In this document: positions 20,801 through 40,900 of the stretch, piece after piece
Position numbering within the stretch: position 1 is the first letter of the stretch
Layout of the letters: the number at the start of each line of letters is the position of its first letter
DNA from: Selaginella moellendorffii
Taxonomy: Eukaryota > Plantae > Lycopodiophyta
Assembly (NCBI RefSeq): GCF_000143415.4
Contig: NW_003314378.1
Span: forward strand, 1-64,000
DNA: 64,000 nt
Reading direction: 5' to 3'
The notes under the pieces: generated by a model
Database searches by the model: none
What the model saw: only the letters and a program-made list of their open reading frames with translations
Told to the model about the DNA's origin: nothing
Position numbers and translations under genes: made by a program

Positions 20801-22560
20801 ACTTGAGCGAGTGCTGGAGCATATACCGACCAAGTACACCCCAGCAATGAACACCAGACTAATGAGACTTTTCACACTGTGAGAACTAAAGGACGCCCTA
20901 GATGACCTCAAGGACGACAAGATGCCAGGGGAGGACGGCATGCCACCAGCCTTCTACAAACAAAACTGGGAATGGATCGGACCAGAAGTTCTCAAGATGT
21001 GGCAAGAAACCATGCGAGCTGGGAAGTGGCCAGAAGGAGCTATGGATGGGATCATTGTGCTAATACCAAAAAAAGGAGATATGTCCCACCTCAAGAACTG
21101 GAGGCCCATCTCTATGCTCAACACCATATACAGGATCATAGCAAAAGCCTTGGCATCACGTCTCAAGCCTCTGCTCCCAGAAACAATTAAGGAGACACAG
21201 AACGGCTTCGTGGAGGGCAGGAAAATTGTGGACAATCTCCTAACAGTCCTTCTAGTGCAAGAACACACCAAAGACATGGCAGAGCAGATCGCAATCATTC
21301 TCTTGGACTTTGAAAAAGCCTACGACCGGGTGGATTGGAAAGTTCTCCAGGCCATAATGATCAACTAAGGAGTTCCTCTGCAGTTCATGGAATGGACAGC
21401 ATCCCTATACCACTCGGCATCAAGCAGGGTTACAATCAATGGAACCATGGGACAATCCTTCAAACTTGAAAGATCGGTCCACCAAGGATGCCCCCTCGCA
21501 CCATACCTATTCCTGTTCGTTGCAGATGCTCTGGCCTACTACCTCGCCCGACCAGAGGGCCCAAAAGTTATGCCCCTTCCAGGCTGTGGTTCCGCGCTCC
21601 AGGACATGAATGAAGCCTCAAAGGAGGACCTCCTATCCTCAGCCTTTGCAGATGACACAAGCCTGATCGTGGAGGGATCACTAGAGAACCTCTCAAACGT
21701 CAAAAGGGACCTGGACTTCTTCAATGAGGCCATGGGATCAAAAATAAACTGGCACAAATTGGTAGGACTATGGCTCCCCCCCGGCAGACCTCCAACATGG
21801 GGCACGGAGCTGGGTTTCAAATGGCTGGACACGAAGGAGACCACCCGCTACCTTGGATTCCAAGTCGGACGCCAGTATGATCCAGAACCTCAGAACCAAA
21901 AAGCAGTTACAAAACTAAGGGATCAACTCAAGTTCTGGGCGAGCAGAAAACTATCATTCTTAGCACACTGTATGGTGGCAAACAGCATCCTGCTTGGAGC
22001 GATCTAGTTCCTGGCAGCATGTTGGAATATGGACAGACGAATGATCCAGGAAATGTACCAACTCATTCGAACCTATGTCTGGAAAGGCTCCTCCTGTGTC
22101 TCACGTGGTGGAGCAAAGGTCAGCTGGCGGTCAGTAACACTTCTGAAGCACGAAGGAGGCCTCAATATTATTGACATCGAAGAACAATGCAAGGCTCTCC
22201 TCTTCAAGATTTTCACGAGGATGCTCATGCCTGGCAACCAACCATGGAGAACACTGCTGCGAGCACAACTTTTGAAAGTCCTCTTGGATAGGAATGAGCA
22301 CACCAGACAAAACTGGGCGACAGATGAACAATGGCTCTTCTCGGACACCAAACTCAAAATGACAAAGGCTCACACGTTCTCAGGAAAGCTGTTCAAGCTT
22401 TGGAGGCAATTCAAATGCAAGTTGGAACATAAACCACCTCGTACCAAAGAACAACTCGACCGGCAGCCAATTTTCCTTAGCAAACTCTTCGCTGTCAATG
22501 GTAAAATGCTCGGAGCTTCAGAGGATTGCGGCCTGGACCAGACCTGCAGAGACCTGCATA
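17900..22560 (+). mobile_element. L1/Tx1-type LINE, degenerate, 3'-truncated
   Basis: ORF1 remnants ~17900-19500; APE endonuclease (VLLWNVGG, FQEH, WILAGDFNF, RLDRFY, FSDHHPI); RT (PGEDG, NWRPISMLN, LDFEKAYDRV, QGCPLAP, FADD); scattered stops and frameshifts. Confidence 0.92.
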
Positions 22561-22940
22561 GTGGGGCCAAAGGTGATCTATGAGGCAATGGCTAATGCAA
22601 AAATTCAATGAGAATAACAAGTTTGGATTAAAATCTCTAACTTAAAAAGTTAGTGAAACTCCCAAAAAAGTGCCTGAAGAGCGAGCATGAAGCAATTGGT
22701 AAGTAGTCTCAAGAAAGAGACAAAAGAATGACTTACATCTTGTGACACATGGAAGTGTCAAGATTGGGCCCGAGACTTCTAGTGTGAATGTTTCATCACT
22801 TTCCTACAGATCTGGGGCTCCAAACTATTGATGAAGGCCAACCCTAGAAGCTGCTCATTGGGATGATCTCTACCATGAAAGCTTTCCAAGTGTTATTGAA
22901 TCTCACTATATAGTCTGTATAGTCACTATATAGGGGGGAG

Positions 22941-23124
22941 ATATGAAAGTGCACAAGAAGAAACCAAGGGAAAGCGGTGTACCTCCATGGGGTACATCTA
23001 AGGTTTCAAGAAACACTTATGGTTAGAGGGTCTGCCCTCTAACCATGAGTGTTTCTTGAAACCTTAGAGGTACCCCATGGAGGTACACCACTCTCCCTTG
23101 GTTTTTTCTTGTGCACTTTCATAT
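22941..23124. repeat. Long foldback inverted repeat (90-bp arms, 4-nt loop)
   Basis: 22941-23030 is the reverse complement of 23035-23124 with 5 mismatches; loop TCTG. Confidence 0.95.
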
Positions 23125-23142
23125 AGATAGTGCATGGCATGC

Positions 23143-23304
23143 TGTAGCACATATTATTTCTCTCCCCTTAAGCCAATTGAAAAAGGGGTAATTGCTTGAT
23201 GAGAGAGCCCTTAGTGGCTATTTTATCCCCATCTATCCCCCAAGGTTCCAAAGATTCACAGTGACAGTATATCCAAATCTCATCCTATGATCACATGTGT
23301 TACA
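23143..23304 (-). mobile_element. Solo LTR of TRIM family 1
   Basis: Reverse-complement match to 16892-17053; TG...CA; perfect TSD CATGC on both sides. Confidence 0.93.
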
Positions 23305-24729
23305 CATGCCATTTGAGGGGATCAAAAGAGGCAAGTACTCACGAATGATTGTGGATGCCAATGGACAGATGGTTCTAGATTCCATAATTGCAACAACATA
23401 GGCCATCAAGCTTGTGAGCAACTCCCCTCTCAAGACTAACCCCTTGGCACCCAGAGTTTCTCCTTTTAGGGATCAAGAGAGACAAGTTCTTTAGTAACTC
23501 CACTCTCAAGTCGCAAAGATTGATTCTTTGGTACTTGGAGCTTCTCCCATCATCTTTTTGCTAGCTTTCACTCAAGACCATGGCTTGAGCTAGAAGGCTG
23601 CAACTACAAGTACCTCCATGCGAAGACCCTTTTTTTGCTCTTTGTTGGTTTTGTGCATAACAAAACTTCTTGTTGCAGCTCTTTGCTGGTTTCATGCCTT
23701 AACGAAACTCAGCCCAGAGTTGGTTTCCTGGTGAATAAAACCCTTGTTTAACAAAATCTGATTCCAACAGACCCTTGTTCTCATGTCTTATCTCCTCAAA
23801 GCTCACATAGTTGTTGTCTCCAAATTTGCCTTGAAGTTGTCGCTCTACACATGCCTCATGCTCAAAGACTTCTAGTGTGAATGTTTCATCACTTTCCTGC
23901 AGATCTGGGGCTCCAAACTATTGATGAAGACCAACACTAGAAGCTGCTCATTAGGATGATCTCTACCATGAAAGCTTTCCAAGTGTTATTGAATCTCACT
24001 GTATAGTCTTCATCCTCCAATTGCTGCAATCAGAATAACTGCTCCAAGGCCCTTCATAAATGACACCTTTAGTGTGTTGAAATTTGCCACCTCTCTTGGC
24101 AGAAGACTCTTCACCCAGGCCTAAGCTCTCCTGTGCACAGCTAGTGAGTAACATTTGCCTAGACCACTACTTTTGGTGCTGTGGACAATAAGAAAGAACA
24201 AACAGTCTAGAGTGCATAAAATAGCCTATGGAAGTTACTTGTTGGTTAAGCACCAGAGAATGTATTTCACAAGAATTTTATAATCTCAATGGAGTAGAGA
24301 GTTCTTACTTGGAAAGGGTAAAATGTTATAGTGGTGACACCATTCCCCACTATTTGTGTTGATGTGCAATGGCTAAACAATTAATATTTTCAGTGCTATA
24401 CAAATGCCTCAATCTAAATAAGTGTTTGGCCTCATTAGATGCTATGTTTAATATTTGAATATGCTAAGAAGTATACTAGAATATACATTTAAAGACAAAC
24501 CACTGAAATAATAACTAATTTGCTATGTGCTGCATGCAATAACACTTAGTTTTCTTAATAGTAGTGTTAACCCTCTTAACCAAATGGAAATTTATACTAT
24601 AAACATATTTATAATTTAGAAATACAAGAATAATTTTATTGAATATCAACAAACTAATAAGTCTTATATTAATATTACAACAGAAAATTGAAGCCCTTTG
24701 CATAATCATGCATCATGTGAGAATTTAGA

Positions 24730-25010
24730 GTTTGAGTAGATTATTGAAGCAGTGAGTTTAAGCTTTCTTATAGTTGGACATACTCATGAAGATGTAGATG
24801 GACTCTTCAGCCATATGTTGGAATCACTTCAATGGGCAAGTTATTTCATTGTTCCACACTGATGAGATTTCAAAAATGCATTTCACAAAAAGCATATTAG
24901 CTTTATAACTAAGGTTGCAGATTTCAAAGTGCTCTCTCAAAAATGATTTTTGTAAAAAGGGTAGTTACATTCTTATTAGCTACTAAAAGCCTTTAGAGTT
25001 TCATGTTAGC
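24730..25010 (+). pseudogene. DDE transposase remnant with FLxVGHTHEDxD motif (Sola-like)
   Basis: Frame reads IIEAVSLSFLIVGHTHEDVDGLFSHMLESL, then KVADFK; not in the ORF track; stops on both sides. Confidence 0.6.
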
Positions 25011-26766
25011 AAGATAAAACTCTAGTCATGCTTAATGTGGCTTTTAGTTATATCCAAGGTTTTCCATGCCAGCCTAACAATAATAATATTATTGGTAGTA
25101 TTTCTAAAGTTTTGGATGAAGGACATCCCAACATATCCATTGATTAAGAATAACTATACAAAAAGGTGATGATCAGTAATTTTAAATCTTAAGAAGTCCC
25201 ATGATCAATTATGTGAAGGTTTTGGACTTTTTCCATTGGTACAAACTCCAGTGGATGATTCAGATTTAATGCCTATATTATAAACAATATTGAACTCGAA
25301 GTAGATATGTTTATTAAGGATAATCAAAGTTCAACAAGTTCCACCTACCTTAATATGAATGATTTATATTAGTGATTAATATTAAGCACTTATTACAAAT
25401 GATTTAGAGGAAGTTTAAATGTGGAAAATTACAGCTGTTAGATTAGGGAATATCCTAGAATATACTTTAATATTCTAGGTATATTCTTTACACTCTCTCA
25501 TTTTCTAAAGAAAATATACATTTAATATTTATGTATGGCTATAATACCATATACTAGTTCTAGAATAGTAGACATTATAGATGACACAATGTTGTTAGTG
25601 TCATACAAATATAGATGATGATTTTAAAGGACGGCATTACAATAATACACTAGTTTGAGTGCAATTATTTGTGTGGATTGGAGCCTTTTTTGAACATTTT
25701 CAAGTGTGTATTTGGATATGTTGACAATTATAGTGCTACTTTTTAGCAATTGTATCATCTCTATCAAGGGCTATCTAAGTCAGCTATGCAATTTCATGTT
25801 TGCTTCTGGAGCATTTTGCTTTATATAGAACCAAATATGTCAGATTGGATCACATGATATTGAGCTTGGTCTTTTAATATTTGCTAAATAATAGTTTATC
25901 ATGTCTACTAAGACACCCTCTCTATTATGCCTAGTGGATTCTTTCTTTGATGATGATTATGCATCTCTTTATTGATGGAATGATTGATGATGTTTCATGA
26001 TAATTAGTTATTCTCTTTGATGGCTTTTGGCTTTTCTCATTACCATATGTTTTTTGTAGTTTGCTCTAGATTAATTTCTTAGGTTTGAGATATAAGTTGA
26101 ATGTTGTTTACACTTGTTTAACAAACTTGAGTTCCTTAGTATAGTTAACTGAGATCTATTCGGATTGGCTGGTATAATGGTTGGCATGAATGAGTATTTG
26201 TTTAATTTGCAATATTCATTCTATTTTATTGATTGTTACTACAGTTAGTTTTAATAGATTTAAATGTTATTTTTTTAAGTGATATATTTATGAGCATTTT
26301 GCTTGTCAGTCAATAATATTTGATGTTCTTTGAGCTATCTTTCTTAAGTTGTTTGATGTGCTATCTACAATCTTTCATAGTTAAACTTTCTTATTGAGTT
26401 TTCTTGATAATAAACTTACTATTAAATTTTGTTGATTGGTTAATCCTATAACTTTAACCTTTTATGATCTTAGTGGTTCCTATACTCTATTTTATACTAG
26501 TTTATCAAATGATAACTGCATAAGACTACTTTTGTGTTCTAATCTAGGATCTATTGAGGAATCTATTTTTTGTATGCCACTTTCATTTGTGTTGGGACCG
26601 ATTGATCAAGCATTTCATTCTCATGAGCTTACTGATGCATCATAACATAGGAAGCATCTAACGAAGTCACTATATCCACCTGACTATCCAATAAAGGTCG
26701 AGAGCCATGATTCACCTCTACAAACTCCACAACATATCAAAACTTGTTGTAGATCATTTTCATACT

Positions 26767-26944
26767 ATCACCTTTTGAGAGGGTTGATGCCCGAGCACCC
26801 TCATCTCGATGCTGCGAAGTTCTATGAGAAGGTTTATTCTGCTCTTTTTTGTCTTTTTTCTTGATGTGATGAGAAGTTTTTTTATGTTTGTTACAGGTGA
26901 ATCAAGATCTCACCCAAACCGATCTCCGTGATACAATAAGGAAC
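26767..26944 (+). repeat. 178-bp intron-containing copy of part of the CR-like gene (=31668-31845)
   Basis: Near-identical (1 mismatch seen), spanning the exon 3 end, the 65-nt intron and the exon 4 start. Confidence 0.95.
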
Positions 26945-27065
26945 CCGGAAATAGCTCACAGATTTAAGCACCCACAATAGAAATTAGAAAATAATTTCCA
27001 TAAAGTGGTGATACTTCTGATAGAAACTTCAGGCTTGAATTGTAATTTGCCAAAAACTCTGCTGG

Positions 27066-27226
27066 AAGTAGAAGGTATGTAGCTTGGGATCTGCTAAGAA
27101 AGACCAACTCAAGGATATCAATTTCAGGATACTGTCAATCACAAGCGACCATCCCCGCTGTGGGCTGAAATTGATATGCTTGAGTTGGTCTTTCTTAGCA
27201 AAACCCAAGCTACATACCTTCTACTT
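27066..27226. repeat. Inverted repeat/hairpin (~62-bp arms, ~37-nt loop) at the end of the COG2 remnant
   Basis: 27066-27127 pairs with 27165-27226 (3 mismatches); flanked by a 54-bp direct repeat (27012-27065 and 27222-27275). Confidence 0.92.
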
Positions 27227-28238
27227 CTGATAGAAACTTCAGGCTTGAATTGTAATTTGCCAAAAACTCTGCTGGTTTCCCAGGTCAAAGTGTGTCAGGC
27301 TTGCCTGCCACTATCACTGAGCGCACTTCTTTAAGAATGGAGTTTCCAAGAAAATTGAACACATTAAGTCCAGAGTTTTCTGAAAAGAAACAAGACCATA
27401 AGAAAACGAGTGAAAAAAGAAAAAGGCATTTGGAAAGCTTACCAGATGCTACGATATCCAACATGAATTTACAATCTTGAGCAATATGCACCTCAACCTG
27501 TTTATAGTCTTCCTCTGGCTTGTCTGCAGCTCCTCCACCCACCAAGTCTTTGGAAGAATTCCCAGGAAAAATCCTGGAGACACACAATTGTGATACGAAA
27601 AGCCTCTTCAGCTCCAGCAGTGTCGTCAATAGCCACATAAGCACGTAGACACGCCTTTCCAGCCTTTCTCGTCACGCCTTTCCAGCCTCGTTTTAATACA
27701 CTTCTCCAAGTTTTCTCTCAAGGAGGCATTGGCATTCTGGATCCTCTTTTCTATGGTTTTGATAAACGGTGACAAGAAAGATAAGTGTCACCTTTTCTGA
27801 AAAATAGAACTTCACCTGGACGTGGGCAACATAGAACTTTAGACAATTCATCTCACTCGCAATTCGCTCCAACAATCAACTCCTCAGGTCGTCACCACTG
27901 TTGTCGACTGGATCCAGAGATCCTTCACTGCCACTCACTAGATTTCTATTGGAAATTCTATTTTCCTTGAGCTCCAGCAAGAGCTTCTCGATCTGCAAGC
28001 AAGCTAGGAGTTGACACCATCGCGCATGGTGACGAGCTTACCTTGCAGCTCTTGCAATGGTGTGAGCATCCGGAGCACAGCACTGTCCACATCCATGAGC
28101 TGTGTGCTGAGGCGCACGAAATCGTTGTAATCCCTGTTGATGAGATCGACGAGCTCGTTCTTGAGCACTGCAAGGTGACTGTGCAGCTCGCCATGCAGCG
28201 CCTCGAGCAGCATGAAGCTGTGCAGGCTAGTCAAAACC
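27218..28238 (-). pseudogene. COG2: Conserved oligomeric Golgi complex subunit 2 fragment (intron-containing pseudogene)
   Basis: ELHSHLAVLKNELVDLINRDYNDFVRLSTQLMDVDSAVLRM, LLERIASEMNCLKFY and SGLNVFNFLGNSILKEV...PGKPAEFLANY match plant COG2; stops, frameshifts, truncated. Confidence 0.88.
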
Positions 28239-28309
28239 CTGAAAAATAAAACTCGAGTTTGTGTGTAAACAGAGCACACTAAAATAAACAAATTTGTGAG
28301 CTTCGAAGT

Positions 28310-29400
28310 GGATTTGTTTAAGTCTACTACATAAGTAGTGAGAATGTTTCTAAGCTCTGTAGCAGCAACATGAGGCTCCGGTCACCAGCCTTGTGGTTGA
28401 TTAGTCATTGGCTCAGGCTCAATGTCTATTTCTCCTATGTTGGAGTTGCAATAACATAATTGTTTTGAGGAAGAGTTCATTCTACAGAAAAGCTCAATCA
28501 GGTGGGATTCTTAATGGACCAGCAGTCTCAAAAGGCCAATAGTACATCATCAAAGACTTAGGATACTACAAGCTTCTGTGGTTGGTTATACCATTTCCAA
28601 GTGCAAATGGAATTGAATTGAGAGAAGCATTTAACTTTTACTTGTTGTTTTTGAGGATGGTATGTGAGAAAAGTTTCAGATTGCTTAAAGGTCATTGGAG
28701 GATGTTTAGGAAGCTAGTTGAAGTTGAGACCATCACTCAGCTAACAGTTGCCATAAAAACAGCTTGCATTTTGCATAACTTCATTATTGGTATAGGTGAG
28801 GATCTCCAACTCGAATATCTAGAGACCTTGCTTCACTATTCATGATTTCTTGCATGACAATTGAGTAATCCTTGTCGTTGTTGTAATAATCATTTGCAAA
28901 AGCATTTCTAGGAAGCTCAACTTTGAAATGCGTGTAGTCAATTGCACCACAGCAATTTGGGAAGCCATGAAGACTCTTGAAACTTATTTTTACTGCTGAT
29001 AGATCTACTGGCCACACAAGAAATTGTCTTAAATGCTGGAATAGGAAACTTCTGACAATACTTTTGGACAGTTACTTTAGAAACACTGAAATGCTCTACT
29101 AAACTAGCAAAAGATAAAGCAATGGCAACTTGCTTACCAACATGAACATATCTAGATTGAATGTTTCTCAAACTTAGAGGTGGTGCTATTTGCATTGATG
29201 GAGTAACAAATTCATAGATTGTCATGAACTACTCCTTAAAAACTCTGAAGAACTCTCTCCACCTTGTTGGATTTTGCATTTCAAACTTGTCCACCCAATG
29301 ACAAGACCTTGGTTTGATATAGAAATCTCCCTCTTGAAATAAGTTCAATTGCAACGAATTCCCAACTACTGCCAAGCACATGTGATAATACACTAGCACT
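28310..29400 (-). pseudogene. PIF/Harbinger DDE nuclease (DDE_Tnp_4/HARBI1-like) pseudogene with internal inversion
   Basis: Minus strand KQVAIAL...GFPNCCGAIDYTHF...DYSIVMQ; the C-terminal block RMVCEKSFRLLKGHWR...ACILHNF lies on the plus strand (~28436-28802). Confidence 0.88.
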
Positions 29401-29650
29401 GATTGTTGTTGAAGAGCAACTTCAAGCCTCTCATCCTCAAGATATTTTCTAAGACACTAGATCTTTTATAAGCAACAACCAACTGTTCATCCCATATGAA
29501 CCCTAATAATGTAGCATTAATCAATGACAAATCAGCATTGACTTAACTTGATTTTAAAATATTCTAGAATAATCTAACATAGATGATGGTTACATGTACC
29601 GTCATTTTATCACCGTCAGCAGACTGTGACAGTCACATGTGCAGCATCTA

Positions 29651-29676
29651 TAAAGCCATTAAAGATTGGCCTTTAG
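29651..29676. repeat. Inverted repeat, left copy (partner 33268-33292)
   Basis: TAAAGCCATTAAAGATTGGCCTTTAG; matches the reverse complement of 33268-33292 at 25/26 (one indel). Confidence 0.9.
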
Positions 29677-29809
29677 TCGGGGGCGGAAAGTTTGTTTTTA
29701 AGGCGGGGGGAGAAATTTCCAGGTAATAAAAGGGTGAAAAAACGGCCCCCAAAAGCACCAAAGGATTATACCCAGACAACGGTGGCTAGGGTTAACAGGA
29801 TCTGAGACT

Positions 29810-32800
29810 ATGGAGGAGATTGTAGAGTTCATCGAAGACATAGATGGAGCAGAAGGTTGCGAGTTCTATCTTAACGATGGTAGAGTGGCAGTAAATGATG
29901 TTCTCCAGGAGTTCTTGGCTGTTTCTATCATTGTGAAGCTCAATGGGCAAGGCAGGGTCAGGTGGAGACGTCTACAGGCAGGGGAAGACGGCCTGAGCAG
30001 GTCTACGTATCTGCCTGGATCTTCTCATACTATTCGGGCAACGAGGGCTCCTACACGTAAGTAGCGTTGCCTGGATCTGCCTCCCTGGTGAGCTTTGTGG
30101 TCTTTGAATCTGAGTAAGGATGTGTTCTTCCTGGGCTGTGCTCCTCTTGAGTTATTTAGGAGTCTGCTTTGCTCGTTTCGCCCTTTGCCGGCTGGTTGTT
30201 TTGCCTCAGGAGTATGGTGCTATTCAGCCTGCTTGTTCCCTGGCTATGGCCGAGTACTGACAAGTTTATATTTCTGTTTCAGCGACCCTGCCGATAACCC
30301 TTCAAGCTGCGCCAGGTAAGCACTTACTGAGCAAAACCACGTCTTGGCTGGAACTTGGCGTTTTCTTGTCGTGGTGCTAGTGCGGCTATAGGGTGTCCGG
30401 GCTGCTGATGGTCTTTTTTTTGGCTCTGTAGCTTGTAGAACGTTTTGCCTGGATTTTCGGCATTGTGGCTCTCATATGCTTTTCAGCTTAATGTGTTGCT
30501 TTTCTGTTTAATGTGTCTATCGGTTTGCTTCTGCTCGTCTCACTTTTTTTTTGCTTTTTGGCGTCTTTTACTTTTGCTTCTACTACTGGCAAGTTTGTGT
30601 TGTAGTGTCGAGGTTGCTGGATGTATACACAAAACAACTGGAGGATGCAAGGTTTTTTCACGGGATGCCGGCGAGGAGGGTGCCAGGCTGCAAGGTGCCG
30701 CTTCTGGACAACGGTGGGCAGCCGTGTTTACATACGGACTTGGGAGATTATTTTACTTTGGTCGGAAGGGAGGAGATGATTCAGCATCTTATGGCTGCCA
30801 CTGCACGGGTCTTTGCAACTTTCATGAACAAGACGGCCAGTGCCTCAGATATTGAACGAAAAGAGTTCTTGTTGATGGTCATCGGATTTCCCGGAGCAGG
30901 TAAAACAACTGTCGGGACATGTCTCTCAGCTCTTTTCAGAGAAGCGTGGGAGAGGGACACAAAAACAGGGACTATAGATGCCATTCTCGGCGACCAGCTA
31001 GGTTACAGTGGGCTTGCCACTCAGTTCAAGGAAGTGGTGAACAACGTGTTGGAGACTGGCAAAGATCTTAGTATGTACCATTCGGTTGAAACGACCATGG
31101 CGGGGGGTGCACTTCTGCTCGAGAACGGCCTGGAAGGCGCACAGGTTTTGGCCCTTCGGTCCTTGCATGCAGCACTTAGTCCAATGAATACGACTGCATA
31201 TGGTGATTTTCTCAAGGAGTTGGATGACAAATTTCCGGGCCTGAGGAATGTGCTGACTTTCAGAGATGTGATCGACTTCATTCGAACTGGTCTTAAGGTT
31301 CCTGCCGACAAGCGAATTTTTCTATCTTGGTTTTTTGATGGAGGCCTCCGAGCTGCATCGTCCTGGATTCATGAAGCTTTCTCGGCCTATGTTCGACATA
31401 TCAAAGGTAACCGAGGTGGCCTGACGTTTCCTGTACTTACAGTAGCAACGACCCGATTTTCTGGGGCCACAATGCGTTACACATCAACGGAGAAGGCAAC
31501 AAGTATTTTTATACCTATTAGGCCTTTGAATGAGGAGGAGGTGGTAAATGTAACGACAATCTTCCTTTCAAGACTAGGAAATACTCTCGGCATGGAGAGA
31601 CCATTTGAGTTGAAGGACGGACTAAGGAATCTGATAAAGTTAGCAGGAGGTAATCCTAGGATGCTTGATCACCTTTTGAGAGGGTTGATGCCCGAGCACC
31701 CTCATCTCGATGCTGCGAAGTTCTATGAGAAGGTTTATTCGGCTCTTTTTTGTCTTTTTTCTTGATGTGATGAGAAGTTTTTTTATGTTTGTTACAGGTG
31801 AATCAAGATCTCACCCAAACCGATCTCCGTGATACAATAAGGAACGCGTGGAGTACTATCAAACGCGGTTATTATTTTCACTACCTTGTGGACAAGAGGT
31901 ATTTGTTGGTGCTACGAGCTCTTTATGTTGCGCTGCTGGGGACCCTGATCAGTCGGGACGAACTGGTCTGGCCAGGTAGCAGATACAAAGATAAGTGGGG
32001 ATTTTTAGAGTCTTGCGGTTTAGTTGCACTCTTACGCAACGAGGTACTTTTCTGATATTTCAGAAGTTCATGTGAGTGGTTATGTGGTGTTAATGTACAG
32101 GAGCCGTCACCCAATAAGCACATAAACTTATCGAAACAGGAAGACACGAAGAATGGAATGCGCTCTTTTTCCGTCATGTTCTCTCCACTCCTTATTTACC
32201 ATCTTGTCGAGAACCTACATGTGGCGGAGCTGAAACATTTATGGCCTCCTATACTGGATTCTAATCCCAAGGTTAAGGAGGTATCAGACCTTATGTGCAT
32301 TGTCTTCATGATATACATGGGTAAGCTTTTTCATGATCGCGAGAAGAAGGACACGGTGTTTGAGTTCACACTCAAAGACATTCTCCCCTCAAATTTCCGC
32401 GTTCCTGCACGTATGCAGGCTTTGAAGTTCCAGTTGCCAGCTGGTGCAACGTTTGGACCTCCGAAACGTCAGCCCCATCAGATAGATACAGCAGACGTAT
32501 TTCAGGCCTTTCTAAGAGAGGACAGGCAGCAGTTTTATTGGGTTGGCAACCATGGACCTGATAGCTTCATCCATCTGCAGCTGGTGGATCTTCAGAACAA
32601 GCTGCAGGACTTCTTTTTATTTATTGAGAGCAAACGCGCGGATGTTTATGAAGGACAGCAAGCCAAGTGGGAAGAAGACTTTCTGAAGAAGATATGGACG
32701 ATGGAGCAATGGATGCCAGGTACTTAATTTTTCTTTGTGGATGGTTAAATGTGTCTTTTCAGATGGGAATTACGCCATGGTTTTTATGACCGATCAAGCA

Positions 32801-33137
32801 GTGTATAACGTGATTTCCAAAGTCAAAAGTTCCAACAGGATGGTTGTGCCAAAGGTTGATAAAGGTCAACACTTGTATCCACAGCAGAGTCCATTTGGTA
32901 AGTAATTGACTCTTTTTGTTATTCTTAGTTTTTATTGATCTATGTGTAGGTTTATTCAGTGCTGTGAGGCACACACCGATGCTAGCTGCTGCAAGTTTTG
33001 ATCCGGACTACGAACCTAGTAATGAGGATAATGAGAGTGGTGATGAGGAAGATGACTGTGGTGATGAGGGTGATGAGGAAGATGACTCTGGTGATGAGGG
33101 TTGTGATGAGGATGATAATGAGTTTAGCCTACTCTAA
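29810..33137 (+). CDS. Crinkler-RHS (CR)-like protein: N-terminal header + P-loop NTPase + PD-(D/E)xK nuclease + acidic tail; 7 exons, 864 aa
   Basis: Exons 29810-30056, 30283-30315, 30606-31732, 31798-32043, 32101-32719, 32763-32897, 32950-33137; all GT-AG, phases consistent, 2595 nt, no internal stop. Motifs: LVGREE, Walker A GFPGAGKT, hhhhD SWFFD, IRPLNEEE, AGGNPRML, nuclease GPDSF...LFIESK. Confidence 0.82.
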
Positions 33138-33267
33138 AAATTCCTGAATGAGAATCAAGAAAACTCTCTATGACTCCATACCTGATGCATAAAAGAGGGA
33201 AAATAACTGGAACTTGCCTAGTAGTGCTCATCCTGCTTTACAGGGGAAGCTTCCACTAAAATCCAAT

Positions 33268-33292
33268 CTAAAGGCCAATCTTTAATGCTTTA
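33268..33292. repeat. Inverted repeat, right copy (partner 29651-29676)
   Basis: CTAAAGGCCAATCTTTAATGCTTTA, 130 nt after the CR-like stop codon. Confidence 0.9.
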
Positions 33293-34239
33293 GAAGGCAA
33301 GAGGCCAAGGGCTGATTCCACTCATATATGACACTACTGCTGCTGCAAAGACCCTCCATGTACTTCTTTGTAACTTTTGAGAAACCAAGAGTAACAAATC
33401 TGCGAAAGCTACTGGCTGGCTGCGAGCATTGTAACTAGATTTATTCATCATATTACCTATTTGTTAAAAACCTTTTACCTCCTCAAAATAATGGATTGAT
33501 GATGGAACAGGATGGTCTGTACAATGGTCATGGGTTTGCTCTGGCCATGGCACCAGCACAAAGGTTAGATGGATATAACAACTATGCCATCCAAGGACCA
33601 CCATAAGCCTGTAATTCTGCTGCTTGGGTGAAGAGGAGGACATTGAAGGTAGTAGATGGTAGGAAGAGTTTTCCAACACATACAACAGTGATGGAAAGTA
33701 AAAACCATCAAGACGAATATGAAGTACTTTTGCTCATCATGGTGGCATGCCTTGTTGCAAGATGGGAGAACTTCATTTTCAAGGTTTAGCCCCAACTAGT
33801 TTTTGAATGGTGAAGTTTTTTAGCTATTCACTACAGAATAAGGCAATTGATGATGAAGTGGCATTCAGTGATAATCTATATAAAGCACTATTACAATGCA
33901 TCACCTACAAACAATCCCAAGAAGGTAAATTAGTTTGAGACTAGGCTTGCAGACCAGAAACCCAACTTCAACACACAAGCTAAACAGATTGGTGTTATGT
34001 CAGATTTAAGCACCCATAATAGAAATCAGAAAATATTTTCCATAAAGTGGGCAACAATAGCTTCACATGCAGTTGAGAATGATAACATGCACAAACCTAA
34101 CACCATACACATTAATGTTCTCTACTCATCCAAAAAGAATTTGAACTTTGCTCATTCGAATGGTGAAGTGATTGCTATAGTGCTTTCCATGCCATATCTT
34201 GCTATAACTTTTAGTGCGTACTACATGAAGCTGAGAAGT

Positions 34240-35210
34240 CTTCACTAGTGGTATTAGATAGAGTTTGAGGTTCTTTATATACATCCACAAAGATTGAGAG
34301 AAGTTTTTTGGGTTTATTCACTTTTCTTTGTGATGAGCTTGTTCCAAAATTGGCCAGGAGGCCTCCTCCAGATTTGGCAAAAATACTAAGGTGGCACTTG
34401 CTTGTTTCAAAGAAAATAGCTATTGCTTTGAAACACTTGGCATTTGGGGATATGTGGTGAATGATTTAATGCATTTGGAGTGACTTCATGCACTACTCAA
34501 GCTTGTCTATGGCATTTTAGGTATGCATTATTTAAGCATGAAGGACTAATGATCCATTGGCCAAATGAGAAAAGAATGAATGAAGTTATAGCAAGATTTC
34601 AAAGATTGCGTGGATTCTCAAATTGTTGTGATGCAATGGATGGCACTCACATTGCAATCAAGCTCCCAAGATCAGGGTTCACAACAAATTGGTATGTTAG
34701 GGCAAGAAAATACTATTCAATGGTAGATAATAAAACTTCATTCTTTGACATAACAACAAGGATAACAAATAATATTCCAAATAGATGAGTTTGGAATTCT
34801 AGTGGTTTGAAGGATTGAAAAGAAGTGTTTATGTAACCTAGTGTACCACACAAAGTTCGAGGGGATTCCATAGTGGAGGATATGATTAATTTTGGTTAAT
34901 AGGTTCATGGCAAAAAGGTACAACTTCCTTCATTCTTCTACATGGATTGTTGTCAAGTGATCTTTTGGAATTTTGAAGAGGCAATGAAAATTGCTAGCTT
35001 AGAAAGGATTCAGAGGACATCAAAGCATCTTTGCAAACAATATCATGGCTTGTTGCATATTGCATAACTTAATGATCACAAAAAATGACAAGTTCATGGA
35101 AAATCTTAACTCTAACAGATTTAACCTCCACAAAAGGTCTCTTCATTTAGCCAAAGATGGCATAATTTTGAGAGATACTGTGGAAAAATTTGTTGAGAGT
35201 TTGGAATGAT
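34240..35210 (+). pseudogene. Second PIF/Harbinger DDE nuclease pseudogene
   Basis: KKIAIALKHLAFG, IHWPNEKRM...GFSNCCDAMDGTHI, SFGILKRQ, ACCILHNL; many stops and frameshifts. Confidence 0.88.
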
Positions 35211-35757
35211 AGTACTTTATTCAATACAATGTTTCTGCATGAACTTGCATCATGAGATATTGATATTTTGTGAGACTAGACGCTATGCTACTGGTCAGTG
35301 AACATGAGAATCCAGAACACAAAAACAGTACCATAGTCCATATAGAATGAAAAAAGGAAATAAGATCCATGAGGAAAAGCTATAAGCTCGCTAGCTAGTC
35401 TTGCAAAGCTTACCATGATCCAGATGTGAAGAGGATACGCATCAGCCTTGTTGGAACTTTGGGCCAAGGCTGTCGATTTCTCCCACAGATCCTATCAAAC
35501 AGCGACTCCATGGATGTCACTGCGAAGAAATTGCAAGAAGAAAAGACAAAGTAGTGTTTGTGACGAGCCAGAACGAAGCACCTTCCATTTTGAAGTTCCC
35601 TAAAAGTCAATGTTCTCCACAACAGTGGATGCATTGTATGACCCTGCAAACATTCCAAAAAATTCTATCAGCCTTCTAATCGAGCCCCGTTATACTTATC
35701 TCTCAAATTTGAGTTGTGCAAAGTGAGGGCACCGCAAATCATGCATGGCAGCATCAC

Positions 35758-36345
35758 TCAGCTGGCCTTGAGCTTGGGCAGGCTAAGGAAGAAGTCCGTC
35801 AACACCGTCTCGTATGCAGGCATCTGGTGAAATAGTTGACGTGGTAGTGGTTCCTGGCTACCACAGATGAGTCCCAGATAAGATTGAAGTTGAAGATCTG
35901 GAGCCCTCAATCCCTTGGCCAGCTCCGCCACAAACTTGGTCGGTGGGAGGCAGTCCGATGCCCCACAGATCTGCAAGAAGCACAGTGCCTCCAACCGGTT
36001 GAGCTCGTCCTCAGGCACATCCGGGAGGGACCTCCGCTTGACACACTTGACGTAGTTGCCCACCACGTACATCTTGAAGATGACGCCACCATGGTTGAAG
36101 AATTCCTGGAGGACAACCGGCAGCTTGAACTTGGTGAGACCCTCTTGGTTGAAGGTGAGAGACATGGCATGGGAGTTTGTGCTGCCATTGGCCACCAGCA
36201 GCTTGGTGATCACCGGGAACTTGGGGCTGCTCATTGCCTTGAGATCGCCCTGGCAATCCGCCCTCAAAGGTCTCCTGTTCGTCACCCAACTGGAGGTCCG
36301 ACACCACCTGGAGCATCTAGATGCGGTTTGTGAATGGAGGATGCT
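35758..36345 (-). pseudogene. ITPK1: Inositol-tetrakisphosphate 1-kinase fragment
   Basis: FPVITKLLVANGSTNSHAMSL, PVVLQEFFNHGGVIFKMYVVG...VKRRSLPDV; N-terminally truncated, frameshifted, internal deletions. Confidence 0.88.
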
Positions 36346-37920
36346 CACTCACCAGCCATGGCAATCCAATCTGGAGCAGCTTCAATGCCAGGGTTCCCAA
36401 TACACCCAAGTAGACAATACTAGAGAACCCTAGCTCTTTGCATTCTTTGCCTTCTCCTTGAACAAGGCATTTGAAAAGTTTATCTTCCCTCCTGACTACT
36501 GGAGACAGCTTGCTGATTCACTTCTGTGCCTGCTCAAGTGATCGGTGGAAGTTCAGAAACTTCTCTACGGTTGGTTGAGTATTTCTATAAACATACTGCC
36601 AAAAAAGAAATAAAAGAAGTGTAAAAGAGCAATGGCCTTGTGAAGAAACTTGAGTACCACACCAAGCATCAACATGCTTATTCTGTGATTCAGGAATTGA
36701 CCATGGACAAAATCTGGATTGATGAAATGTGTATGTACTATTCCCCAATGCCCCTTAGGGGCTAAAAACAATATCGAGAGTGCACTCTTAAAGATACTAA
36801 CAAGACTACAAGCACGGATGCCCGGTGCTGCTTGTGGGATGCCTGCCTTCCAGGTGACTCCACCGCAAAACTTGAAGCCACCTGCTACACTCCACGACAC
36901 TCGAGACTGCTACAGAACACTCCACCATCAACATGCATCCAGTGCCAAAACGATGCCCGATCGCAATGCAACTCCAACTCGTAGATCCATGCGAGGTGTG
37001 AACATCCTCCAACTCATAGTCAGAGTGTGCTACCCTGCCTCCTGCATGGGACAAGTGCACTAGCCCATTTTCAAAAGATTCCTAGCCCTAGGGACTAGAG
37101 AAATGGCCCAAGCCTCCTCTTATGGGAGCCAAATGCTCCAGATCTAGCGTTGGAGAGGAAATGTGTGGATCCCCTACACATGCAGCATCTAATTATCTCC
37201 GTTGGCTGCTAGTCCCTATTGTGGTTGCTAGTCCCCATTGTGGCAGCAATCCCTGCCATTGGATCCAAAAATCCTCCCTTCCCGATCATCCTCAAAGCGA
37301 GACATTGTGCATGGTCTTCCAAAGAGAATCTAGAAAGCTGGGAACTTTTTCAAGTCCTAGTTACTCCAAATCACCCATAAAATAACATCCAGCTCCACCA
37401 ATCCTCAATTGCTACTGTCTCTATCACACATCAAGGCAAGCAAGATCACATAGATTTTGGTAAAGAACTCTATTTCTAGAGTTTTTGCAACTGTTTGTCC
37501 ACTGTCGAAATGCCTTAAGAGCCTCCTAATACTGCAACAACCTGCCACTGCTAGCGCTAGAAGCCCTAACTGCCCTCCAACAGGAATCCTAGCTAGCCGC
37601 TGCCCAAGAACCTTAATTCCAGAGTGTGAGCTAGACAAGAGCTGGATCGAGATCAAACTTTGGACTTGCATTTTAACAATTTAAAAAACAAATTTGGCAA
37701 TTCTACTTCTCCTTTGTCACGGTTGATTCCACAAAAGTTTGCCTGAGAAGTTGAAGCTCCTTGCACATCATGTGTGTTCTTTGCAACATCATCACATCTC
37801 TCCTATCTACAGCCACAATTGAAGCTTGGTGCTATTCATCATTAGTTACTTAAATTTTCTCCAAGTCTCATAGCTCAGGTCGTCTCATAAATCTGCTGGT
37901 TCCAGTTCCAATTCCATTAG

Positions 37921-40900
37921 TGTTAAGCACCACATCAGGATAATAGGATAAAGAAGGGGCAATGTGTTAGGTGCCAGCTTTGACCACATGGTCAACGTTG
38001 GTCAAAGGGAGGCTCAAGGGTATATTAAGGGATGTTAGGGTAAGGGAAAAAAACCTACCCTAGGGCTTACAGTGGAGTGGCGGTGCAGTGGAGCTTTTGA
38101 GGTAGCTCGGGGGTGGTTGGTGAGGAACCTCAAGAGGTGGTGTAGCATAGTCTAGGGCGACTAGATCTCTGTCTTTTTGTGCCAGATCATAACATTGGTA
38201 TTAGAGGAGTTGGTTGCGATGGCCGACCAAGCTGAATGCTGGAATCCTATTGTCAGTGGTGGTGCTGATGATGGTGCTGATGAAGCTGTGGAGATTTGGA
38301 CCATTCAATATGTGGTTCATGAGCTGCGAGCCCTTAATCGAAATCAGCAAAAGATGCAAGACAAAATGCATGGCATAATGGATACCATGCATGGGCGTGT
38401 TGAGGCACTCGAGGCTGGACGGGGTAGCACTCCAAGTAAACCTTCTTTGGTAGAGCGACTCAAGATTCCAACCTTTTTCGGTGATGGTGGTGTGGATGAG
38501 TGTCTCGCTTCGCTAGCCAATGTGAAAAAGTTCTTAGCTGCTAAGGGAACTCCAGATGCAGAGGCTTTAGTGGCTATTCCAATGGTTTTGCGTGATGTGG
38601 GTCTTTGATGGTGGAATTGGCTTAAGGAGTCTTGTGTTGCAGATAAGAAACCACCAGTGTCTACCATGGATGAGTTTGAGGCTGCTTTCCGTTTATGTTT
38701 TGCCCCTCATTACAACGTGGAAAATGCTCATACAAAACTTTGATTCGAGCAAGGGAAAATGACGTTCGGGGACTATATTGAGCTTGATTAGTCGTGTTCC
38801 AATGAAAGATCCAGATCAGAACAAGTCCTACTTCATTGATGGCCTACATATTGAGAGCATGCAGCAACACTTGCGTCATTCTCACCCTACAAAGAGTTTG
38901 AAGGAGCTTTTTGATGTGGCTCGTTGACTTGACAATGACAAGCATAGGTCTTGCAAGCATTCGCAAAGTCCTTTTGTCGATAATCATTGTGATAATTGCC
39001 ATGGACACAAGGATGGGAACAAGCATCACAAGTTGAAGTTGGTGGTGACTACTTCGGATGCAAAGGGGTCCAAGAAGTGGAAGTTCTTTGTGAAGAATTA
39101 TAAACAGGGTTGTCATCATTGTAGCGAACTTGGACACTATAAGGCTGATTTTCCGCAGTTGAAGAACAAGCAGTAGGATAAGAAAAATGGCCAATCTTCT
39201 AGTCATGGTAAGTTAGATACTAAAAAGTTACAAACTTTGCAGCATGAGGATGATGAGAACAACCATTCTGATCAAAGGAAGAGACTTTCGATCGTTGCTC
39301 GTTAGCTCAACTGTGTGTGGAACAAGATGGAGCTCGAGGATACGTGTGAATCAGCTTTAATGCTGGAGGGCGTGTTCCGTGGCGATCCAGTGCAGATTTT
39401 ACTGGATAGTGGGAGCGATAACAACTTTGTTTCGGCTAAGTTTGTTGCAGAGCATGGCCTGGTCACACGCGGAGTTCTTCCATACATAGTGGAAGGTGCA
39501 ACTACCTCTACTTAGCATTTTGATGCTTGTCTCGAGGGGCTGGAAGTGTTGGTTGGCAAAACCACACTTGTGGAGACTTTTTATCTCGCGGATATCCATC
39601 ATGTGGATTTCATTTTTGGGATGCCATGGTTGGTGAAGGTGGATCCAGAAATAAAGTGGAGTATTAAGCATATCTCGTTGGAGTATGATGGTGTTAAAGA
39701 TGTGTGGTTTGGCAAGGGCGTTCAACCACCAGTTGTTATGCTCTCTGTTAACTCTTTGAAGTAGGCTTGTCGTAATGGAAAAGCACTTTCGAGTTACTTG
39801 CTATTTGTTCATGACTTGGGGGACCAAGGCACGTGTGGGGGAGAAGCAACAGTACGGGATGTACTTGATGAGTTTTCTGATGTTTTTCCATCTGAACTTC
39901 TTCATGGGTTGCCTCCGTTACGAGGTGTGGAGCATGGGATTACATTAGAGCCGGGGACGTGGCCATTTTACCGGTGTTCATTTCGGTTAAGTTATGCAGA
40001 GGAGCAAGAAGTTCAACGACAAGTCAAAGAGTTACTTGAGTTTGGATTTATTCAGCCAAGTAAGTCTCAGTTTGGTGCTTTGGTCTTGCTTGTGAAGAAG
40101 AAGGACGGTTCAATGTGGATGTGTATTGACTACCGCGCTTTGAACAAGAAGACAGTGAAGGATAAAATGCCAATGCCATATGTGGATGATATCCTAGACA
40201 AGCTTGGTGATGCACGAGTGTTTACCAAGATTGATCTGAGGAGTGGATATCATCAGATTGCAATGGATGATGCATTTATCTCCAAAACGGCATTTAACAC
40301 AAGCTTTGGACATTTTGAGTTTACAGTTATGCCGTTTGGTTTGACGAATGCACCAACCACATTTACTTGGTTGATGACAAAGGTATTTGGGTGTTATCTT
40401 CATGAGTTTGTGAAGATTTTCTTGGACGATATTCTTGTTTTTAGCAAGAATATGGAGGAGCATAAGGTGCATTTGTGCAAGGTTCTTTTGTTACTCCGAG
40501 ACAGCAAACTTTATATGAAGAAGAGCAAATATGAGTTTGCAAAGTCAGAGGTGGAATATCTAGGCTATATTGTGACATCTAAGGGTGTCAAGATGGATCC
40601 AAGGAAGGTGGTTGTGGTGGAAAACTGGCCTACACTGACTACAGTGGCCGAGTTGCGCAGTTTTCTTGGTATGGCATACTACCAATGTTTCCAGCATAAG
40701 TTTGCAGAGGTGGCTATTCTTTTGATGTGGTTGTTACACAAGAATGTGCCATTCGAGTGGAAGAAGCCACAAGAGGAGAGTTTTGTAGTGTTGAAACGAT
40801 TGTTGAGCGAGACTCCAGTGCTTCACATTGCTGATCCATCGAAACCTTACAAGGTGACATGCGATGCGAGTGGTTATGCACTGGGAGGAATTCTCATGCA

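Follow-up and report, generated by a model that had tools for sequence, protein, structure and literature searches.

Evidence against a mobile unit at a Crinkler-type gene of Selaginella moellendorffii that lies between inverted Harbinger-like ends

The genome of the lycophyte Selaginella moellendorffii carries, on scaffold GL377682.1 (assembly GCA_000143415.2), an intact gene of the Crinkler-RHS (CR) type that is bracketed by the two arms of a short inverted repeat and by remnants of Harbinger transposases, and this arrangement raises the question of whether the gene travels as part of a transposable unit. The stretch analysed here, called the window, comprises 64 kb of this scaffold. It had been suggested, in an earlier note on this DNA, either that the repeats are the termini of a new 3.64-kb DNA transposon whose only gene is the CR gene, or that they are Harbinger ends facing outward, with the gene as cargo of a Tn10-like composite or of a reversed-ends arrangement. 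The first of these, if true, would provide a DNA-transposon route by which Crinkler-type genes spread in a land plant, and if the unit moved at all, an effector- or toxin-like family would be tied to a transposon vehicle, which would explain its many Selaginella loci. The evidence points against a mobile unit. The repeat is most plausibly what Harbinger elements have left around a CR paralogue resident at this site, and not part of a new transposon, an interpretation that we hold with about as much confidence as doubt.

The inverted repeat was found as described in the earlier note. Its core (29657-29676 and 33268-33287) is 100% complementary over 20 nucleotides (nt), and with one 1-nt indel it grows to the full arms listed in Table 1, in which 25 of 26 positions pair and the right arm has one G fewer than the left. 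When the core was searched for with up to three mismatches, only the two arms were recovered from the window and a set of 100 shuffles yielded no match, and no likeness was detected beyond the 26 nt, inward or outward, since local alignments over 150 or 300 nt stayed at the level of shuffled sequence. The arms lie tightly and symmetrically around the gene, with 133 nt between 29676 and the ATG (29810) and 130 nt between the end of the stop codon (33137) and 33268. Read outward from the gene, both consist of C, TAA and A-GGCCAATC-TTT-AATGG, and the triplets TTA (29673-29675) and TAA (33269-33271) adjoin the two ends.

It is this outward reading that identifies the arms. The end of the rice element mPing has been given as ggccagtcacaatgg, with TAA or TTA duplications (PMC3480845). 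Compared with it, the outward reading of the arms keeps 12 of the 15 mPing bases with one gap, directly beside the correct triplet, whereas the opposite reading, taken from the outer edge, keeps 9/15. Such a match in such a place is too good for chance, so that one of the arms, if not both, is a genuine end of Harbinger type that faces outward, as had been suggested for both. On the other side of the arms no direct repeat was found at the outer edges (flanks ...GCAGCATCTA and GAAGGCAAGA...), including any duplication of 2-10 nt, and with TAA at one edge and TTA at the other, the two triplets are mutual reverse complements and thus form no direct repeat.

The relatives of the gene have been compared as a set of eight gene copies at six loci (L001-L005 and L009). 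Homology between these paralogues and the window is confined to the gene body and runs from 29761 to 32997-33049. Identity over this length is 80-84%, and the introns can be aligned as well; the 5' limit of the homology falls within 29761-29810 and its 3' limit within 32997-33049, both inside the arms, and the paralogous contigs in the sequencing runs stop at 29784-29810 and 32997-33046. Alignment of paralogue flanks had been proposed as a check, with homology that stops just outside the repeats to be taken as support for a new transposon; the homology found stops short of them. At the equivalent places neither the arm repeat nor any other inverted repeat longer than 12 nt is present in any of the eight copies, and the stretches that separate each arm from the paralogue homology (29677-29760 and about 33050-33267) belong to this copy alone. 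One of the loci, L004 (GL377585.1, 1-25421), holds a tandem CR array with a period of about 12 kb, and the CR family spreads by way of gene bodies and tandem arrays that lack these ends. The flanks of the gene were likewise looked for, and neither turned up next to a paralogue or at another place in the fetched sequence. As an observation in its own right, a further CR paralogue, about 90% alike and nearer than any fetched annotated copy, occurs in RNA- and DNA-type sequencing runs; over 29848-29942 it has 8 of 16 L004 differences in common (site 29848-29940 and others), and the DNA-type runs X25 and X26 hold this paralogue and not the present locus.

The gene between the arms is transcribed and spliced. 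All six intron joints are present in spliced contigs of the RNA-type runs X1 and X13, the last two introns being crossed without mismatch by one contig of each run, and the NCBI annotation places an 864-amino-acid (aa) gene at the same position, so that the gene model of the earlier note stands. The designation of public runs as RNA-type is a guess of the tool used, and the spliced contigs would otherwise be hard to explain. From the extent of the exactly matching contigs (Table 1) it follows that both arms lie just outside the transcribed stretch. Thus, with all its introns spliced, the CR gene acts like an ordinary nuclear gene.

Its product has, in order, a conserved N-terminal header, a P-loop nucleoside triphosphatase (NTPase), a helical linker, a restriction-endonuclease-fold domain (E...GxD...ESK) and an acidic tail. 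Its Walker A motif is GFPGAGKT. Eight residues that follow the Walker B aspartate elsewhere in the family have been lost in frame from this copy only, which reads FFD-GG where 13 of 13 aligned relatives read FFD-(E/D)-x-N-K-A-..., and this loss (31333-31345, residues about 335-340), which is covered by an exact RNA contig, removes the acidic residue and the asparagine of the family-invariant D-(E/D)-x-N. The copy has an intact and expressed reading frame, and its product probably does not work as a normal NTPase. In the C-terminal domain, E, G-x-D and (E/Q)-S-K are kept throughout the family; a model of the nuclease domain, built from an 80%-identical paralogue, reached a predicted local distance difference test (pLDDT) score of 65-89 in its core, and the top matches in Foldseek (E 1.5e-3 and weaker) and VIA (Z 5-6.2), modest as these scores are, were nearly all PD-(D/E)xK nucleases, among them MUS81, N.BspD6I, Card1, FokI, Can2 and McrC. 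The domain is thus predicted to adopt the restriction-endonuclease (PD-(D/E)xK) fold with conserved catalytic residues.

Pfam searches of the protein and its relatives returned nothing significant, only weak AAA_16 and ORC-CDC6-like matches, and the Crinkler header PF20147 was left unscored. The model of the header had low confidence (pLDDT 57), a beta-beta-alpha-beta-beta order and no significant fold match, and this 80-aa header also occurs on Selaginella proteins with different C-termini. In a protein-feature search the family lay beside eukaryotic clusters annotated as Crinkler (0.95) and also near bacterial proteins that combine an ATPase with Mrr/Hjc. Clusters resembling the NTPase part numbered 16 among 1.84 billion representatives, mostly from Selaginella, and the named ones outside this genus are from one fern, from two streptophyte algae and from the transcriptome of a marine protist. 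A separate observation concerns the C-terminal tails, which are unlike between close paralogues: here the tail is acidic, rich in D/E and encoded with 30-nt repeats (32998-33137), and in the 80%-identical paralogue at L004 it is a long basic repeat (GQVGRTRSKT...).

On either side of the arms lie the remains of two transposases, both broken. The earlier note had described outward-reading Harbinger pseudogenes on both sides, which holds for the right one and for the N-terminal half of the left one, the C-terminal half of the left one being inverted. The left pseudogene, whose start lies about 200 nt from the left arm, has a match to DDE_Tnp_4 above the curated cut-off, and no convincing repeats were found at the borders of the inversion inside it. 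Other copies of the left-flank sequence, about 83-90% alike, exist in DNA-type runs, and neither a protein search with a 95-aa open reading frame nor tblastn against all fetched loci returned a copy of the left Harbinger family. The right pseudogene, which is more decayed and obtained no Pfam score, is recognisable only by a D-G-T-H motif and by its likeness to the left one (37% identity over 65 aa, E 8.5e-13). An 883-nt stretch of it is absent from the alternative-haplotype scaffold GL378110.1, which is 97% identical, breaks off at window position 33832 and so does not reach the right arm, 540 nt away; the junction has no inverted repeat or duplication. On the left side a 10-nt end match at about 28524-28533 was considered as an outer end and rejected, as it lies inside a transposase reading frame.

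Table 1. Coordinates of the bracketed gene, its repeat arms and the flanking remnants in the window, with the copies of the paralogous array
Feature	Position	Strand	Remarks
CR-type gene, 864 aa, 7 exons	29810-33137	+	six GT-AG introns; joints from RNA-type contigs
Exons of the CR gene	29810-30056, 30283-30315, 30606-31732, 31798-32043, 32101-32719, 32763-32897, 32950-33137	+	gene model
Exactly matching RNA-type contigs	29750-33178	+	contig tables; depth zero from 33250, so transcript within 29750-33249
Left arm of inverted repeat	29651-29676		minus strand reads C-TAA-A-GGCCAATCTTTAATGG-CTTTA; mPing-like end pointing left, away from the gene
Right arm of inverted repeat	33268-33292		plus strand reads C-TAA-A-GGCCAATCTTTAATG-CTTTA; same end, oriented rightward and outward
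Left Harbinger transposase pseudogene, N-terminal half	28787-29456	-	three frames; reads away from the CR gene
Left transposase pseudogene, C-terminal half, inverted	28405-28842	+	DDE_Tnp_4 (PF13359) positions 107-158, E 1.8e-7
Right Harbinger-like pseudogene	34269-35206 (34269-34457, 34465-34785, 35003-35206)	+	reads outward; starts some 1 kb beyond the right arm
Stretch absent from alternative haplotype GL378110.1	34235-35117		883 nt inside the right pseudogene; GA microhomology at the junction
CR copies of L004	9961-13188 (full), 21931-25158 (full), 1-1134 (partial third)		L004 coordinates

Taken together, these data suggest the following course of events. The arms would be PIF/Harbinger (Pong/mPing-like) ends, each with its TAA/TTA target triplet and each pointing outward, so that the 3.6 kb between them would be flanking DNA between two transposon ends and not the interior of an element. 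This DNA would hold one resident, transcribed and spliced member of the CR family that has expanded in Selaginella, and the flanking Harbinger sequences would be one-ended, decayed remnants in a transposon-rich and rearranged interval. The arms may thus have arrived by Harbinger insertion near both ends of the gene, and the bracketed unit itself would not transpose. In that case the left arm, whose GGCCAATCT lies some 80 nt upstream of the transcript start, may by now contribute to the promoter.

Several findings weigh against this account. The search for further copies of the arms covered the 64-kb window and seven other fetched loci of S. moellendorffii, both paralogue and alternative-haplotype, of about 155 kb, and neither the rest of the window nor that sequence yielded the end a third time, so that two independent insertions at a distance of 3.6 kb are unlikely. 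Between the two transposases, identity is only 37% over the 65 aa compared and DNA similarity is almost nil, yet the arms agree at 20/20 positions (25/26 over their full length); the ends of two old and unrelated elements should have drifted, so that near-identical arms are left unexplained. Moreover, no matching outer ends of the flanking elements were found, the best candidates (13/22) being at the level of shuffled sequence; a TWA+GGCC site is lacking in 24000-29650, an end-like site is lacking in 33290-39000, and the three GCCC+TWA sites to the right are unlike the end. Each element would thus have to have lost its outer end in a truncation of its own. The base outside the triplet (G/C) is also common to both arms, and each arm is a near-palindrome whose outer edge likewise reads TAA-AGCCATT..., so that, on the letters of the arms, polarity alone would still allow them to be the inward-enclosing termini of a 3.64-kb element. 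Finally, in the DNA-type runs X25 and X26, which are labelled as the same species, provide about 200 Mb of contigs each, contain 5-7% of the words of this locus and lack this gene copy, the depth beside the right arm is zero, and a contig that belongs to the repeat family of the left flank departs from the window at 29656, exactly where the perfect 20-mer starts. These unexplained points favour a single event linking the two arms, either an inverted copy of one end or, less likely, a one-off element.

The former, namely that one arm is a genuine Harbinger end and the other a short inverted copy of it, is the alternative that survives best, although we consider it unlikely. The real end would most simply be the left arm, given its 200 nt distance from the start of a transposase, and the other would be a 26-nt inverted duplicate, produced either by inversion of the 3.6-kb segment through a staggered break or by templated filler synthesis during double-strand-break repair as the CR copy arrived. 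Inversion through staggered breaks duplicates the overhang in inverted orientation, and templated filler DNA arises at double-strand-break repair junctions. Such an origin requires neither a duplication nor outer ends, and it fits a repeat that is sharply bounded, with nothing alike inward or outward, that takes in the target triplet and one more base, that is near-perfect between old and unrelated pseudogenes and that has no third copy in the other sequence searched.

The neighbourhood also offers some support for it. The segment 26767-26947 is a 99% direct copy of CR gene positions 31668-31848 (181 nt, comprising the end of exon 3, intron 3 and the start of exon 4), and 11 nt further on 26959-27008 (50 nt) is a 94% copy of the right flank at 34001-34050, the two source sites of this patchwork (26767-27008) being 2.15 kb apart. 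It is followed by a foldback with 63-nt arms (27065-27127 and 27165-27227, 95%) and a 37-nt loop, located between perfect 54-nt direct repeats (27012-27065 and 27222-27275) that are unusually long for a small inverted-repeat insertion. With this patchwork and foldback at 26767-27275, the half-inverted left transposase and the 883-nt haplotype deletion, the interval is rearrangement-prone. Under a copied arm, however, the outward reading of the right Harbinger pseudogene becomes a coincidence, the borders of the inversion in the left pseudogene bear nothing comparable to the repeat, and no un-inverted or copy-less allele was seen, the alternative haplotype stopping before the right arm.

It is improbable, in our view, that the bracketed DNA is an element after all, that is, a single-copy, non-autonomous and possibly Harbinger-type transposon (about 29654-33289) that contains the CR gene with its core promoter and was moved in trans by the transposase of a Harbinger element. 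The symmetric spacing of the arms just outside the transcript, the near-palindromic arm with its second TAA at the outer edge, the unique sequence inside each arm, which is what subterminal sequence would look like, and the left-flank family contig that diverges at 29656 all agree with such an element, and Crinkler-like genes flanked by transposon repeats have a precedent in fish (PMC12957317). Nevertheless, the reverse-complementary edge triplets amount to no target-site duplication, the outer reading of the arms is the poorer match to mPing, no second copy appears among the eight paralogues, none of which has the repeat, or in the other sequence searched, and the loss of the Walker B acidic residue makes the CR protein a poor candidate as its own mobilising enzyme; the proposal of a new transposon type is accordingly not upheld. 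What had been named as refuting it was only partly found: the paralogues do lack the repeat, whereas the fetched sequence holds no further copies of the 26-mer that would reveal an abundant Tourist-like family.

There is a slim chance that the arms are not transposon relics and have been kept for a function at the borders of the gene, for example as paired binding sites, for which the near-palindromic form of the arm would also speak. The left arm contains, some 75-95 nt before the point where the RNA contigs begin at their most 5' extent, GGCCAATCT, which we take to be the CCAAT-box consensus, here at about -80, and a TATA-like TAATAAAAG lies at about 29724-29732, some 25 nt before 29750. The near-perfect identity of the arms amid decayed surroundings would suit such a role, as would the five occurrences of GGCCAATCT in the window against an expected 0.5. 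On the other hand, three of these five copies are ascribed to long terminal repeat (LTR) sequences, the promoters of the paralogues have no such box or repeat, and the arms form only weak hairpins (-3.3 kcal/mol, z about -1 to -2). Apart from the arms and unrelated to them, TGGCCAATCTTC, which contains GGCCAATCT, occurs three times in this transposon-rich window (1942, 39188 and 48026).

Least of all can the gene be expected to move between outer ends as a Tn10-like composite or to sit within a reversed-ends pair, the cutting of which would delete it: although two Harbinger remnants do lie inverted around it with their inner ends intact, no outer ends were found above the level of shuffled sequence, both transposases are broken, and in the fetched loci no Harbinger-CR-Harbinger block recurs and neither flank is refound beside a paralogue, all of which makes this part of the earlier proposal very improbable.

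Past the flanks, gene calls are limited to a 69-aa COG2 fragment and a shortened ITPK-like gene. The former (28004-28213) is an N-terminal fragment annotated as a gene and called on the window's own scaffold only; the latter (35758-36348) encodes 290 aa, and a 321-aa ITPK1 protein elsewhere is 67% identical to the queried stretch. The genes bordering the interval are partial copies themselves. Loci fetched by way of these two neighbours match the window with 100% identity at identical coordinates. Long interspersed nuclear element (LINE) and Gypsy sequences follow farther out.

With Harbinger debris as the favoured interpretation, the remaining interest of the locus is modest and consists of a deeply conserved mPing-like end in a lycophyte, of a pair of inward-facing ends, near-perfect and unexplained, next to remnants of transposases that are unrelated, and of the possibility that a transposon end supplies the CCAAT box of an expressed CR gene.

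Comparison with known systems helps to place these features. With mPing, Ping and Pong of rice (PIF/Harbinger) the locus has in common an end that starts GGCCA.TC, finishes AATGG and adjoins TAA/TTA, together with DDE_Tnp_4 transposase remnants beside the arms. It differs from them in that the flanking elements have one end each, the ends lie face to face on either side of a host-type gene and do not enclose the element, an extra A stands between the triplet and GGCC, and the two transposases are only 37% identical to each other. Tn10-like composites and reversed-ends pairs of Ac/Ds likewise consist of two elements of the same superfamily inverted around a cargo-like gene. Composite transposons need usable outer ends and a working transposase, neither of which the Selaginella locus possesses, and excision by a reversed-ends pair would cost the genome the gene in between and would not transport it. 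Inversions that leave inverted duplications at their breakpoints, and templated filler DNA at repair junctions, resemble the locus in the sharp, near-perfect inverted duplication at the borders of a segment, the lack of a target-site duplication and the patchwork structure; the difference is that the duplicated piece in Selaginella is a transposon end and that an ancestral arrangement is lacking.

As regards the protein, CR effectors have been described, in the work of Zhang et al. (2016) as summarised in PMC5289972, as combining an NTPase with a helix-turn-helix (HTH) segment and a restriction-endonuclease C-terminus, and CR proteins are modular and found in free-living eukaryotes too (PMC5289972). 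The Selaginella protein is like them in its putative header, predicted P-loop NTPase, helical linker and restriction-fold nuclease, and the recurrence of its header with other C-termini matches the modular logic of CR proteins (PMC5289972). It is unlike them in that the family obtained no score for PF20147 and no other significant Pfam score, that the 16 related clusters include no sequence-level match to an oomycete Crinkler (CRN) protein, and that this copy has lost the Walker B acidic residue.

A parallel to the arrangement as a whole comes from teleost fish, in which Crinkler-like AACRNL loci are flanked by terminal repeats of hAT or mariner elements, the authors proposing that the neighbouring elements duplicate the gene (Nat Commun 2026, PMC12957317). 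The fish duplicates share their transposon flanks, whereas no Selaginella duplicate shares the Harbinger ends, which moreover point outward, and the C-terminal module in fish is an ADP-ribosyltransferase where the Selaginella protein joins an NTPase to a nuclease. Both cases nonetheless present a Crinkler-type gene of a free-living eukaryote with DNA-transposon repeats on both sides, and through the fish loci (PMC12957317) the general idea of such an association already has a precedent.

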